Positions 703-30,198 of a DNA stretch of 64,000 nt are shown piece by piece. The DNA is from Octopus sinensis. Taxonomy: Eukaryota. The notes beneath the pieces are model-generated. The model ran no database searches. It was not told where the DNA came from and saw only the letters and a program-made list of their open reading frames with translations. A program made the position numbers and the translations under genes. The DNA is taken from contig NC_042997.1 in assembly GCF_006345805.1 (NCBI RefSeq), positions 26,226,001-26,290,000 on the forward strand. Direction: 5' to 3'. Within the stretch, counting starts at the first letter, position 1. Every line of letters starts with the position of its first letter.

Positions 703-838
703 AGGCAAACTGCTCTCTTTAGTTCGCAAAAGTTTAAATAAGTGACTCCATCAGTTCCACATATCTTAAATAAAATAAGTATCACACACACTGGGCATTT
801 TTCTTGTTTAGATGGAGCTGCTGTATTCAGAACGGCTC
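703..838 (-). CDS. Kazal-type inhibitor gene A, exon 2: (G)AVLNTAAPSKQEKCPVCVILILFKICGTDGVTYLNFCELKRAVC(L)
   Basis: Acceptor ttctattaccAG|G at 840-839; donor CT|GTAAGT at 702. The 136-nt phase-1/phase-2 exon is open and carries the Kazal signature CGTDGVTYxNxCxLxxAxC. Confidence 0.9.
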
Positions 839-982
839 CTGGTAATAGAAAAGAACTCATTTGTACATTTTAAATTATAAAAATAAATATAAAAATGCAA
901 TACAAATATTTTGGCCTCTATCATAATATATACATGTTCCGCTATATTTTAAGGTATCTTGTTGAAGGTATATATCTTTTAT

Positions 983-1229
983 CTTTTACTTGTTTCATTC
1001 GTTAGACTGTGCCGATGCTGGAGCACCGCCATGGGTTTAGTCGAATGAATCAACCCCCAGTACTTAGTTTTTAAGGCTGGTAATTATTCTATCGGCCTCT
1101 TTTGCCGAACAGCCAAGTTATGGGAACATAAACATACCAAAACTGGTTGTCAATCGGCGGTGGAAGACAGATACAGACACAAAGATACACATATACAGAT
1201 ATATATATATTATATATATATATATAGTG

Positions 1230-1303
<74 letters not shown>

Positions 1304-1481
1304 TATATACATGACAGGTTTCTTTCAGTTTCCGTCTAACAAATCCACAAATCCACTCACAAGGCTTTGGTCGGCCCGAGGCTATAGGAGAAGACAAGTG
1401 CCCATGGATACCACGCACTGAGACTGAACCCTGGACCATATGGCCTGGAAGCAAGCTTCTTACCTCACAGCTATATCTGCC
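983..1481 (-). mobile_element. tRNA-derived SINE family C (CORE-like domain, internal microsatellite)
   Basis: Homologous to 4707, 5878 and others; tail actgaaacaagtaaaag. Confidence 0.8.
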
Positions 1482-1959
1482 TATTTTCATGGCAGGTGAA
1501 TGAAATTGCGCGGCATCCTTTCTTTTCTTAAAAATATCAAGGTTGTATGAAGATGAAAATGAAGTAGCTTCTGGTGAAATTCGAAAAAGTAACACATATA
1601 TAAGCAACACAGACCATGAAATATTGAAGAGAATGTATATGTAATAAAACTTATTGATGTATATTATGATAAAGAAACTGATGGGAATTCATTCGATTGT
1701 ACTCCACTTTCCGTCGACCCATTGTGTATGAGTTCTAATATCGTTATATTAGAACCTTTGCATAGTGGATCAATTAGAGAATTCACTCATTCATTCTTCC
1801 TCAGAAATTCATGCTCAACCAATCAACCTTTCAATAATAAAACAACAAAATAAAACAGTCATATTTAGTTGTGTCACAAAAATCAACTAACAAAGAAAAT
1901 ATTGTTTATATCTAAAGACAATGCAATTAAACAATATTTAATGCATTTAGTAAGTAAAG

Positions 1960-2660
1960 TATTCATTTGCCAAGAAGGCTGAGGGTGTCTTGGCATCACT
2001 TACCAAGTCCCTTGTGAGCCGCTCTCCGGCTATCTATCTGAGGCTTTATACAGCTATGGTGTGGCCTCACCTGGAATTTGCATCACCAGTCTGGAAGCCC
2101 TATCTTACCCAGGATATTAATCGTCTGGAAACCGTTCAGCGACGTGCAACCAAGAGAATACCCTCCATCAGGCATTTGCCATATTCTGAACGCCTTACTT
2201 CCCTGGGCATGGATACATTGAAACTCCGACGTCTGGCAGCTGACTTGGCAGACACCCATAAAATTATTAACCATCTTTCTAACAATAACTCTGAGCTCCT
2301 TTTCAAACTCCACCTGTCTAACACCCGTGGACAAAGTCAGAAAACAGCACAGCTCCCATGACTTTCAGAAACATTTTTTCACGCTAAGAGTTGCTGAAGC
2401 GTGGAACAAACTGCCGGCATCAGTTGTTAGTTATCGGAGTACTGCATCCTTCAAAACTTTCATGCTTCCTGAGATTCGCCAACACTACACCAGTTTTTCT
2501 CCCCTCCATACACACGCAAGCATGTATCTGACTCATACACTGTTCACTCCCCAGACATTTGTACATTACTGCATATGCTCTATACGCACTTTTGACAAGT
2601 TGTGGTGCATCTGAGCACTGTAAACAATAATTTCATTATATATTATTATTGTTATTATTT
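1960..2660 (+). mobile_element. CR1/L2-clade LINE 3' fragment
   Basis: LYTAMVWPHLEFASPVW...LETVQRRATK...YSERL...RRLAADL, then FFTLRVAEAWNKLP; short (ATT)-rich tail. Confidence 0.85.
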
Positions 2661-27610: not shown

Positions 27611-27658
27611 GTCTTACAGCTGTTTCAGGGATATGAGGGATACCTCTTCATCAGAGAC
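27611..27658 (-). ncRNA. Minimal type I hammerhead, left arm of foldback
   Basis: - strand: GTCT CTGATGA AGAGGTAT-CCCTC-ATATCCCT GAAAC AGCT GTA AGAC; stem III is the palindrome ACAGCTGT. Confidence 0.8.
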
Positions 27659-27961
27659 GATATGAGAAAGTTAAATAGATGGAAATAGAACAGTTCAATA
27701 TAGGAAGTTATTCTGTAAAGGGAGCGATATAGGAAGTATAAGTGGTCATAAGAGAATAAAAATAAATATATACGTTGGATGCTGCAGTTGCAGTTCAATT
27801 ATCCAAGTACTTTCCTTGGATAATTGAACTGAAACAATAACATCCAACATATATTTTTATTTGTATCCTTATTTCCATTTATATTTCCTATATCTCACCC
27901 TTTCCAAAATAACCTTTTATGTCGAACTCTACTATTTCCTTCTATTTAACACTCTCATGTC

Positions 27962-28009
27962 GTCTCTGAAGAAGGGATATCCCTCATATCCCTGAAACAG
28001 CTGTAAGTC
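27962..28009 (+). ncRNA. Minimal type I hammerhead, right arm of foldback
   Basis: GTCT CTGAAGA AGGGATAT-CCCTC-ATATCCCT GAAAC AGCT GTA AGTC; one stem I mismatch. Confidence 0.75.
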
Positions 28010-30004
28010 TACATTTCTCTTTATAAATGTCCTAGAAATATATATATCGTCAGTAGATCATAAATCCGAAACTCTAAGTTATAGAGCAGTCGATAGCTAT
28101 GGTCGGTCTATGGGGTTACGCTGAGTTTCTTCAGATCCTAATGGCCGGTAGCCTATGACCTCTCTTGAAAGTTGAGTGAGACAAGACCTCGTAGCTACTT
28201 GTTGAACGCTCGAACAAAGGGTTAAGCACAAGGGATTTTCTCCCTTAGACCACAATCTATAGTCGGCCATATGTCTTCTATATTATAATGAAGGAAGCTG
28301 CTAATCAATTAGGTATTTAACAATTACTAAAAGAATGTAATTATTAAAGGCTTGACCTTCTGGAAATTTTTTCTAAATTCATATTCCAAGAAGTTTCCTG
28401 TAATTTCGATTTCTGAAATTTATTGAATATTTGAACTACAAGTTTTTCACAAATTTAAATATTCGTTGAATTCACAGCGGAGTAGATTTTAATGTTTAAT
28501 AAACAATATCATTCATTTGCAAAAATTTCTCACCTCTATTTTCATTAATGATAATTTAATATATGATATATTCACTTCAAGGTTTTCATTTCGAGTTTTA
28601 ATTCGCTATTTGCAAAACCCACAATTTATTCTATACACGTAATGTAAAAGAAATATTTATTGAATGGATAAATGCTATTTAGCAAAACAGCCATGGAACT
28701 TTGAGGATTATGATACGGGGCACGATTTCAAGAATATTCTCAGTTTCCGGAGTTAGTTAAATTAATATTTTTGATAAAATGAAAATTTTTAAATATACTG
28801 GTATAATTTTGTTTGTTTTTTTTAAGTTAAGAAGTAATTTTGTTGATATGGCCGTTTGGAACGCTATAAGCTTTACTATAATAACTATGCGATCACTGCT
28901 ATTTCTATCACGCTAAACGTAGTTGGGTTACCTTGAAGTTTGTTTAAATTAGAAATATATTACAACTACGATAAATTACTGAAAGTAAGTGAGATTCTTT
29001 TATAAATTGAAATTTTTTAGGAAAATTTACTTTCTAAATTTCCTTTTATTATTGAATATTTCAAGTTCACGAATTTAAATATTCGGTACAAGATAGCTTT
29101 TAACGAGCTTTTATAGGTTTCACTCCCTGGAAATTTTTGATAAATTCCTCTATATCGACAAATATGCAGTTTCGAAATGATTGTTATTACTTAAATTCAC
29201 GAATTTAAATATTCGTTGCCAAGCTTTACATTTACTGCAGAGTCAGTTTGAACATTTGATAAACAATATTGATATGATATGGCGAAATTTTTCGTTTTCA
29301 TTTGCGACACAGTCTCTCACTCTCTCTCCCGCCTCTAAAATTGATTTCATTAATAATAATCTATTTAATATATATTCATTGCAATTTTTTCATTTCAAAT
29401 TTTATTTAGTTATTTCAGATGAGGAAATCAGGTATTTTGTTGACTTAAATTTGCTGTGTAAATGTTCTCAGTTTATTGTTTATACATATTGGAAACAAAT
29501 TATATTGGACAACTTATTAAAACTTACTGAAGCTACGGACTCACGCGACTTATTTCTTTTCTCTCGTTATCTAAAAATTATCAAATAAATTTGTTACTAT
29601 GACTATTTGATATGCTATAGATATTTAGGTATCTCTATGTGATCCCTACTATTATTTTGCACACTAAAGTATTTGGACTACCTTGGTGTTTATTTAAAAA
29701 AAGATTATGACTGTGATAAAATGGTGAACGCAATATTTACTAAGCAAGTAAGCATTATTATATAAATAAATAATTAGACATAAAATATCGTAAAATTATT
29801 AGAATTGGGAAACAAATGTGAAAATATTATCAAGTGGCTAGCAGAAAACCGCCCAGATGGCGGTCTTTCTGCTAGCACGAATAATGACGATTTTCTCATA
29901 ATTTCCGAGAGAATATCTATGGCATCTGACGACTTTCTTAGTTCAGGTCACGCGAACTGTTTCTAATGCATACATGTAGATTTCTACAAGTAAATGTGCG
30001 TGTA

Positions 30005-30058
<54 letters not shown>

Positions 30059-30143
30059 GTGTGTGTGTGTGTGTGTGTGTGTTTGTGTGTGTGTATGTGT
30101 GTGTGTTTGAAAGTACTAAAATATTTTCGTTTTTCTATTATAG

Positions 30144-30198
30144 AGGCAAAATACCGAAAGATGTTAAAAAAATCCACGACGGTCCTTGTCCCAAATAG
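30144..30198 (+). CDS. Kazal gene B, exon 3: (R)GKIPKDVKKIHDGPCPK-stop
   Basis: Pyrimidine-rich acceptor ttttcgtttttctattatAG. Phase 2 matches exon 2 and supplies the Kazal C-terminal HxGxC with the sixth Cys. AATAAA about 60 nt after the stop. Confidence 0.88.

Follow-up and report, generated by a model that had tools for sequence, protein, structure and literature searches.

Kazal inhibitors are substrate analogues, and the six cysteines of their domain pair 1-5, 2-4 and 3-6. In human SPINK1 the coding position c.194 lies a few residues past Cys5. The exon ends of this gene, as deduced from the designations c.56-37T>C and c.194+2T>C, are c.55 in phase 1 and c.194 in phase 2 (PMC10306969, PMC3190254). 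The P1 residue of Kazal domains is located two residues past Cys2 (PMC13101452). Schistosomins and conkazals (the MKAVA superfamily) are single-domain, non-classical Kazal proteins of molluscs and Conus, whose genes are interrupted in phase 1 at the signal region and in phase 2 between the last two core cysteines, and whose paralogs lie adjacent or in tandem; the proteins carry eight conserved cysteines, a fourth disulfide that tethers a C-terminal helix, a mature part of about 73 residues and Glu at P1 (PMC13101452). Here we analyzed a stretch of 64,000 nucleotides from Octopus sinensis (RefSeq assembly GCF_006345805.1, contig NC_042997.1, positions 26,226,001 to 26,290,000 of the forward strand), referred to below as the window, in which an earlier note based on the letters alone had proposed a head-to-head pair of Kazal genes. 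With a probability of roughly three in four, we conclude that the window contains two genuine paralogous genes in head-to-head arrangement, gene A and gene B, each of which encodes a signal peptide followed by a single six-cysteine Kazal domain.

The exon structure of both genes can be read directly in the DNA. Gene A lies on the minus strand and gene B on the plus strand, with start codons that are 6,082 nt apart and divergent. Reading the stretches and joining the exons reproduced all coordinates and junctions given in the earlier note, as well as its spacing of about 6.1 kb with the genes pointing apart, and the spliced translation of gene B was identical to the product it had reported. Exon 1 of gene B (11414-11450, 37 nt) starts with ATG, holds the first 12 residues of the predicted signal peptide (MSKVFLFVLLLS) and ends in the phase-1 donor CAG/GTAAGG, where the slash marks the junction. 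It is followed by intron 1 (11451-23912, 12,462 nt), which is enlarged by repeats and by transposon-like open reading frames (ORFs) at 16492-19443. Exon 2 (23913-24039, 127 nt), with the acceptor tgtgaaaag/GGG and the phase-2 donor CCG/GTAAGT, codes for the end of the signal peptide (GAVLNATA) and for Cys1-Cys5 of the Kazal domain. After intron 2 (24040-30143, 6,104 nt), the coding part of exon 3 (30144-30198, acceptor ttttcgtttttctattatag/A) reads RGKIPKDVKKIHDGPCPK followed by TAG and supplies Cys6 together with the Kazal C-terminal motif, the stop being placed two codons past Cys6. When joined, the exons form an uninterrupted frame of 219 nt that encodes a product of 72 aa, MSKVFLFVLLLSGAVLNATAQSQRCPICLPVVKMICASNKITYWNECIMRWKICRGKIPKDVKKIHDGPCPK. 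Two overlapping AATAAA polyadenylation signals (30259-30268, plus strand) lie 61-65 nt past the stop, and TATA-like A/T elements are located 52-64 nt upstream of the ATG. Gene B looks complete.

Gene A displays the same architecture as far as it can be followed in the window. Its exon 1 (5332-5296, minus strand, 37 nt) starts with ATG, holds the first 12 residues of the predicted signal peptide (MSPVVVLLLLLS) and ends in the phase-1 donor CAG/GTATGT. A TATAAAA element on the same strand (5370-5376), 44 nt upstream of the ATG, is a possible TATA box, though a weak signal in AT-rich DNA. Intron 1 (839-5295, 4,457 nt) contains repeats resembling short interspersed nuclear elements (SINE-like repeats) and, as recognized by eye, a reverse-transcriptase-like remnant in which Pfam gave no match. 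Exon 2 (838-703, 136 nt), with the acceptor ctattaccag/GAG and the phase-2 donor CCT/GTAAGT, codes for the signal-peptide end (GAVLNTAA) and Kazal Cys1-Cys5 (CPVCVILILFKICGTDGVTYLNFCELKRAVC). Together the two exons give MSPVVVLLLLLSGAVLNTAAPSKQEKCPVCVILILFKICGTDGVTYLNFCELKRAVCL, that is, 57 full codons plus two bases; the reading frame stays open at its phase-2 end, one codon past Cys5, as in gene B. Exon 3 is absent from positions 1-702, where no in-phase acceptor yields a G-x-C ending and a C-terminal Kazal sub-profile is silent. Because intron 2 of gene B already measures 6.1 kb, exon 3 of gene A is most likely located beyond the window edge. Directly adjoining exon 2 we noticed an intron-like segment of 72 nt (631-702, minus strand) that carries GTAAGT, two TACTAAC elements and TTTTCTTTTCTGCAG, and splicing it out opens an in-phase frame of 89 codons. 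With this tail the Kazal profile stays incomplete, the Kazal_2 score drops from 32.2 to 29.0 bits and no other family is matched, and we consider a real splice at this position unlikely. The 37-nt phase-1 exon, the GAVLN start of exon 2, the phase-2 end after Cys5 and the canonical splice sites described in the earlier note thus hold for both genes. Its term signal exon is right in size and phase, but only 12 signal residues are encoded there, and the remainder (GAVLN..A) lies with the cleavage site in exon 2.

Kazal membership (Pfam PF00050/PF07648; MEROPS family I1) is directly visible in both products. The comparison with the Pfam profiles that the earlier note had named as a check came out in its favor, since both products pass the curated thresholds: gene B scored 28.4 bits with Kazal_1 (cut-off 21) and 27.4 bits with Kazal_2 (cut-off 22.8), and the partial product of gene A scored 32.2 bits with Kazal_2 and 27.1 bits with Kazal_1, both above the gathering cut-offs. 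For an independent profile, we took 58 Kazal domains of unrelated database proteins, kept the window sequence out, and derived a hidden Markov model (HMM) from them. Every stop-free fragment of 12 residues or more in the six frames of the window (3,133 in total) was then searched with it. Only the two exon-2 fragments matched, with E-values of 8.4e-10 for A and 1.1e-9 for B (next best 0.37), and the sub-profile of the part past Cys5 had the exon 3 fragment of gene B as its sole match (8.8e-4; next best 0.42). Similarly, a regular expression of the Kazal cysteines and aromatic residues matched both exon-2 sites and nothing else in the six frames of the 64 kb. The family pattern C-x-C-x7-C-x6-Y-x3-C-x(2-6)-C-x-C is found as well, with all six cysteines in B and as far as Cys5 in A. 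No additional paralogs or Kazal exons were detected in the window by regular expression, tblastn or HMM.

The six cysteines of gene B are spaced C-x2-C-x7-C-x10-C-x6-C-x15-C, and Cys1-Cys5 of gene A, the part within the window, C-x2-C-x8-C-x10-C-x6-C. By its residue counts, this spacing is of the invertebrate/agrin type (Cys4-x6-Cys5) and not of the classical vertebrate type. The commonest spacing among 719 comparable domains taken from the database matches was 3-7-10-6-13, as against 2-7-10-6-15 in B, and a two-residue spacer between Cys1 and Cys2 was present in 22 of them. With gene B as the query, phmmer searched 1.84 billion representative proteins, which stand for about 15 billion public proteins; the 512 matches with E<=1e-3 were Kazal-repeat proteins throughout. 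The matches listed were multi-Kazal proteins with 26-42% identity, none of the best 150 exceeding 42%; examples came from a chytrid, from nematodes (agrins) and from Penaeus (a 'four-domain proteases inhibitor-like' protein). In the PDB, mature B matched the agrin Kazal repeats (2e-10) and rhodniin (5e-7), and further ovomucoid, FSTL3, an elastase inhibitor, SPINK2 and infestin. Judging from these comparisons, both products belong to the Kazal family at large and are closest in pattern to its invertebrate-type domains.

The predicted fold agrees with this assignment. An AlphaFold2 model of mature B, built from an alignment of 58 Kazal domains, reached a mean predicted local distance difference test (pLDDT) score of 94 and shows a strand at residues 15-17, a bridge at 22-23, a helix at 26-34 and a strand at 44-47, i.e. 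the central alpha-helix on a small three-stranded sheet that characterizes the Kazal fold. Foldseek matched the model to infestin-1 with template modelling (TM) scores of 0.77/0.86 and a root-mean-square deviation of 1.3 A, and also to rhodniin, OMTKY3 (the ovomucoid third domain), FSTL3 and SPINK1; all 50 of the 50 matches listed were Kazal or follistatin-type domains. Because its alignment was made of Kazal domains, the model indicates compatibility with the Kazal fold and is not independent proof of it.

Next to the Kazal domain itself, the two genes share their first exons and signal regions. The exact 13-mer TCGTTTTACTGCT is confined in the window to the two first exons, and allowing up to one mismatch gave three matches in the window where 0.1 were expected by chance; the third falls in a pyrimidine tract (26922) that has neither ATG nor donor and was discarded. 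By protein similarity alone the first exons are not significant (tblastn E about 0.8). A scan for an ATG followed by a hydrophobic run and a phase-1 GT donor returned only these two mini-exons when (GT)n-type microsatellites were left out, and only these two have a CAG/GTA donor. The 13-mer sits at 5307-5319 (minus strand) and 11433-11445 (plus strand). The two exons are equally long, yet its position in them differs by 6 nt, which implies two compensating 6-nt indels. Three Val/Leu codons match exactly, in contrast to the saturated synonymous sites elsewhere, and a constraint at the nucleotide level or a small conversion tract is possible.

In both genes S/GAVLN spans the phase-1 junction, and Cys1-Cys2 form a CPxC motif (CPIC, CPVC). 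By inspection, the N-terminus of gene B consists of MSK, VFLFVLLLSGAVL and N-A-T-A/Q, and that of gene A of MSP, VVVLLLLLSGAVL and NTA/A, where the slash marks the presumed cleavage site. Thus MSK or MSP is followed by 9-10 unbroken hydrophobic residues, SGAVLN and small residues, and A-T-A/Q in gene B agrees with the -3/-1 rule. Cleavage of B is likely to occur at the predicted site ATA/QSQ, which would leave about 52 aa. Similar N-termini are present in Kazal matches, for example ...GFAVLNAAS in a Penaeus inhibitor. Identity between A and B amounts to 13 of 20 residues in the signal region and to 11 of 37 in the remainder, five of which are cysteines (Fisher p = 0.013), in line with the earlier observation that the signal regions are conserved and the mature domains are not. 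The remark that the mature domains share little beyond the cysteines is equally accurate: over the Cys1-Cys5 core, 98 (for B) or 352 (for A) of 750 foreign Kazal domains score at least as well as the sister does. Taken together, the pattern supports the proposal of a divergent pair of paralogs of a three-exon type with a signal peptide and one Kazal domain, and A and B are, on this sequence evidence, paralogs from an old duplication.

The age of the duplication can be seen from the synonymous differences between A and B, which are saturated (proportion pS = 0.70 in both parts), with nonsynonymous proportions (pN) of 0.23-0.42. The crude ratio of nonsynonymous to synonymous rates (dN/dS) is 0.13 in the signal part and 0.30 in the mature part, both below 1. 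Due to the saturation, the pair says nothing about evolutionary rate, and its dN/dS had to be discarded as a test of fast evolution. Despite the saturation, the frames, the phases, all seven splice sites (four GT, three AG) and the cysteines in the window are intact in both genes. Such long-kept intactness argues for function and against pseudogenes. In 5.8 billion clusters, a word-index search with B and partial A brought up no relative with shared words, and two degenerate-pattern scans of metagenome contigs found no orthologous DNA. That no relative above 42% identity appeared among the best 150 matches suggests that the genes are unannotated, or may simply mean that the annotation of the source genome lies outside that library.

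We infer that both genes are transcribed and spliced as modelled. Their products would then enter the secretory pathway, adopt the alpha/beta core of Kazal domains with its three disulfides, and most likely inhibit serine proteases by the standard mechanism, in which the Cys2-Cys3 loop acts as a substrate-like, tight-binding segment. The P1 residue of rhodniin, His10, aligns to the same position as the one two residues past Cys2, and the P1 predicted from it is Pro for gene B and Ile for gene A. Both loops between Cys2 and Cys3 (LPVVKMI in B, VILILFKI in A) are unusually hydrophobic and do not contain the usual ...PVCG. Pro or Ile at P1 and hydrophobic loops argue against trypsin-like targets; Pro18 and Ile18 ovomucoid complexes are among the PDB structure matches. 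Most likely, the two products would be secreted standard-mechanism inhibitors with a non-trypsin (elastase- or subtilisin-like) specificity, with about even odds on the inhibition step itself. Instead of inhibiting strongly, they may be weak inhibitors or have a non-inhibitory binding role.

Several observations weigh against two genuine genes of this kind. Searches of protein clusters, representative proteins and metagenome DNA gave no transcript, spliced read or ortholog, the third exon of gene A is unseen within the window, and the acceptor of gene B exon 2 (gaaaag/G) is below consensus strength. The fold match depends on the sequence match. In addition, Pro occupies P1 in 23 and Ile in 3 of the 719 comparable domains, and in the ovomucoid third-domain P1 series Pro reportedly ranks with the poorest P1 residues against standard serine proteases. 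One or both loci could accordingly be untranscribed or decaying relics of a Kazal pair, for which the empty searches for a transcript or ortholog, the last exon of gene A that is not in the window, the introns bloated by repeats and the atypical loops speak (Pro or Ile at P1, and eight very hydrophobic residues between Cys2 and Cys3 of A). Yet the synonymous sites are saturated while the ATG, the 37-nt exon, the phases, the splice sites, the cysteines and, in gene B, the stop and polyadenylation signal have been retained, and unconstrained sequence of that age would have lost some of these features. With 6.1 kb in intron 2 of gene B, a third exon of gene A past the window edge is also to be expected. 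We therefore regard pseudogenes as unlikely.

The Kazal exons could also be real and our gene models wrong, if the genes were longer or differently spliced, used other first exons, had extra domains outside the window, or if the 702-631 intron led into a non-Kazal tail. Such models are quite unlikely in our view. They find support in the GTAAGT, the TACTAAC pair and TTTTCTTTTCTGCAG past exon 2 of gene A with its in-phase frame of 89 codons, in a 3' end of gene A that is beyond reach, and in a link between exons 1 and 2 of gene B that spans 12.5 kb without read support. The alternative tail, however, leaves the Kazal profile incomplete at a lower score and brings no family match, and there are no further Kazal exons in the 64 kb. 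Both loci independently pair exons 1 and 2 with S/GAVLN across the junction, and the stop and AATAAA of gene B directly follow Cys6. A chance pattern deserves mention because the DNA is AT-rich and microsatellite-rich, and its abundant (GT)n and (TA)n tracts translate to Cys/Val-rich pseudo-peptides. It is extremely improbable given that an independent profile selected exactly 2 of 3,133 fragments at E-values of about 1e-9, that both pass the Pfam gathering thresholds, that the exon architecture matches at both loci, where the first exons share the 13-mer, and that none of the exons lies within a microsatellite. Two genuine paralogous Kazal genes thus remain our preferred explanation.

A further question is whether conserved signal regions next to diverged mature domains reveal a fast-evolving defence or venom family, as the earlier note had suggested. 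It is doubtful that A and B represent a lineage-restricted family of secreted proteins on the Kazal scaffold, in which the signal exon and the gene structure were kept and the mature domain diverged to a new target. The conkazals, recruited from schistosomin-like genes, are the model for such a history. By that analogy, the hydrophobic non-canonical loop with Pro or Ile at P1 would be especially diverged and the role would be in defence, venom or neuroactivity and not in housekeeping, which we find equally doubtful.

All that the two loci have in common beyond their exons is copies of a dispersed repeat, none of them in mirror orientation, and an extended or recent inverted duplication between them is not visible. 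The region between the start codons (5333-11413, 6.1 kb) contains microsatellites and three copies of a SINE-like repeat. This dispersed repeat of about 420 bp has a tRNA-like head (by eye), with (TGTA)n in its interior and a tail rich in A/T, and occurs in at least 12 copies with 66-79% identity; in each Kazal gene, one copy lies a short way into intron 1. The repeat may resemble SINEs of octopus. Copies were mapped to 969-1473, 4701-5108, 5875-6292, 7336-7729, 11698-12121, 31646-31861, 33585-34020, 34595-34983, 36117-36253, 44027-44268 and 57704-58201. ARAGORN detected no tRNA in the repeat, Rfam and tRNA scans were empty, and a literature search with a string from it returned nothing. Intron 1 of gene B contains three consecutive Asn-rich ORFs (16492-19443, plus strand; 274, 239 and 142 aa) with no Pfam match, the last of which has a Cys-rich start followed by ...GENNVIY... 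and by eye resembles a GIY-YIG-type mobile-element nuclease.

Mobile elements were also observed elsewhere in the window. An uninterrupted reverse-transcriptase ORF of 773 aa (39085-41406, minus strand; Pfam RVT_1) has no database record of its own, and its best relatives, with 49-57% identity, are in arthropods, cnidarians and fish. Together with a 162-aa ORF just upstream of it (41466-41954, minus strand), it is possibly a young copy of a long interspersed nuclear element (LINE). Further LINE fragments at 55509-56429, 56416-57498 and 63274-63822 (minus strand) and at 52394-52846 (plus strand) comprise a second RVT_1 ORF and neighbours that resemble endonuclease or C-terminal parts, in which Pfam found no match. 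A remnant of a mariner/Tc1-type transposase is present at 60581-61150 (minus strand; Pfam Transposase_1, E 2e-14). Two other regions are artefacts of the ORF track: a (GT)n-type microsatellite at 35223-35817 with four overlapping pseudo-ORFs of 153-187 aa, and a repeat of about 400 nt at 48782-49180 whose translation is poly-Val with T/A/I interruptions.

If transcribed, the pair would add two small secreted Kazal proteins that are probably unannotated. The statement of the earlier note that the ORF track missed them is true, though trivial, because the exons of gene B comprise 12, 42 and 18 codons and cannot be seen in a prokaryote-style ORF list; short multi-exon cysteine-rich genes easily escape ORF-based tracks. 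The known picture of the Kazal family is unchanged by these ordinary additions to a very large family; what is mildly unusual about them is confined to their atypical reactive loops.

With the invertebrate-type Kazal domains of rhodniin, the infestins and the 'four-domain protease inhibitors' of shrimp and crayfish, the pair has in common the six cysteines with a short Cys1-Cys2 spacer, Cys2-x7-Cys3, the motif CxxxxxTYxNxC, Cys4-x6-Cys5 and the (H/Y)DGxC end, and infestin-1 and rhodniin are the best fold and sequence matches of this type in the PDB. These inhibitors are arranged as tandem arrays of domains, whereas each gene here has one, and they commonly have Arg, Lys, Ala, Glu or Asp at P1 where Pro or Ile is found here. 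Cys1-x2-Cys2 is rare, Cys2-x8-Cys3 sets A apart, and the usual PVCG(S/T)DG is only partly kept, as KICGTDG in A and MICASNK in B.

The schistosomins and conkazals, with which we compared the pair by description only, share the order of a signal peptide, predicted for our pair, and a Kazal domain with no propeptide between them, the Pro right after Cys1, the intron phases 1 and 2 and the proximity of paralogs in the genome. The first intron is placed just past the signal peptide there and inside it, after residue 12, here. B has six instead of eight cysteines and ends two residues past Cys6, which leaves no C-terminal helix, and where that group has Glu at P1, B is predicted to have Pro and A to have Ile; for these reasons we excluded membership in this group. 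SPINK1, the pancreatic secretory trypsin inhibitor, is a secreted single Kazal domain, as is predicted for our pair, with a phase-1 signal exon and a phase-2 intron inside the domain, and matches the model of B with a TM score of about 0.72-0.75. It differs in its long Cys1-Cys2 spacer, Cys4-x2-Cys5, Lys at P1 and four exons, and is only 21-23% identical; the classical vertebrate SPINK spacing (long Cys1-Cys2, Cys4-x2/3-Cys5) stands against Cys1-x2-Cys2 and Cys4-x6-Cys5 in our pair. The phase-1 and phase-2 introns that the pair shares with SPINK1 and with the schistosomin and conkazal genes add one more indication that this gene structure of Kazal proteins is ancient. Finally, agrin is the best sequence match in the PDB (2e-10, summed over nine repeats) and has the Cys4-x6-Cys5 spacing and the TYxNEC...C motif in common with A and B. 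The domains of agrin, follistatin and FSTL3 are modules of large matrix or growth-factor-binding proteins and mostly non-inhibitory, whereas the Kazal domain of our pair stands alone behind its predicted signal peptide.

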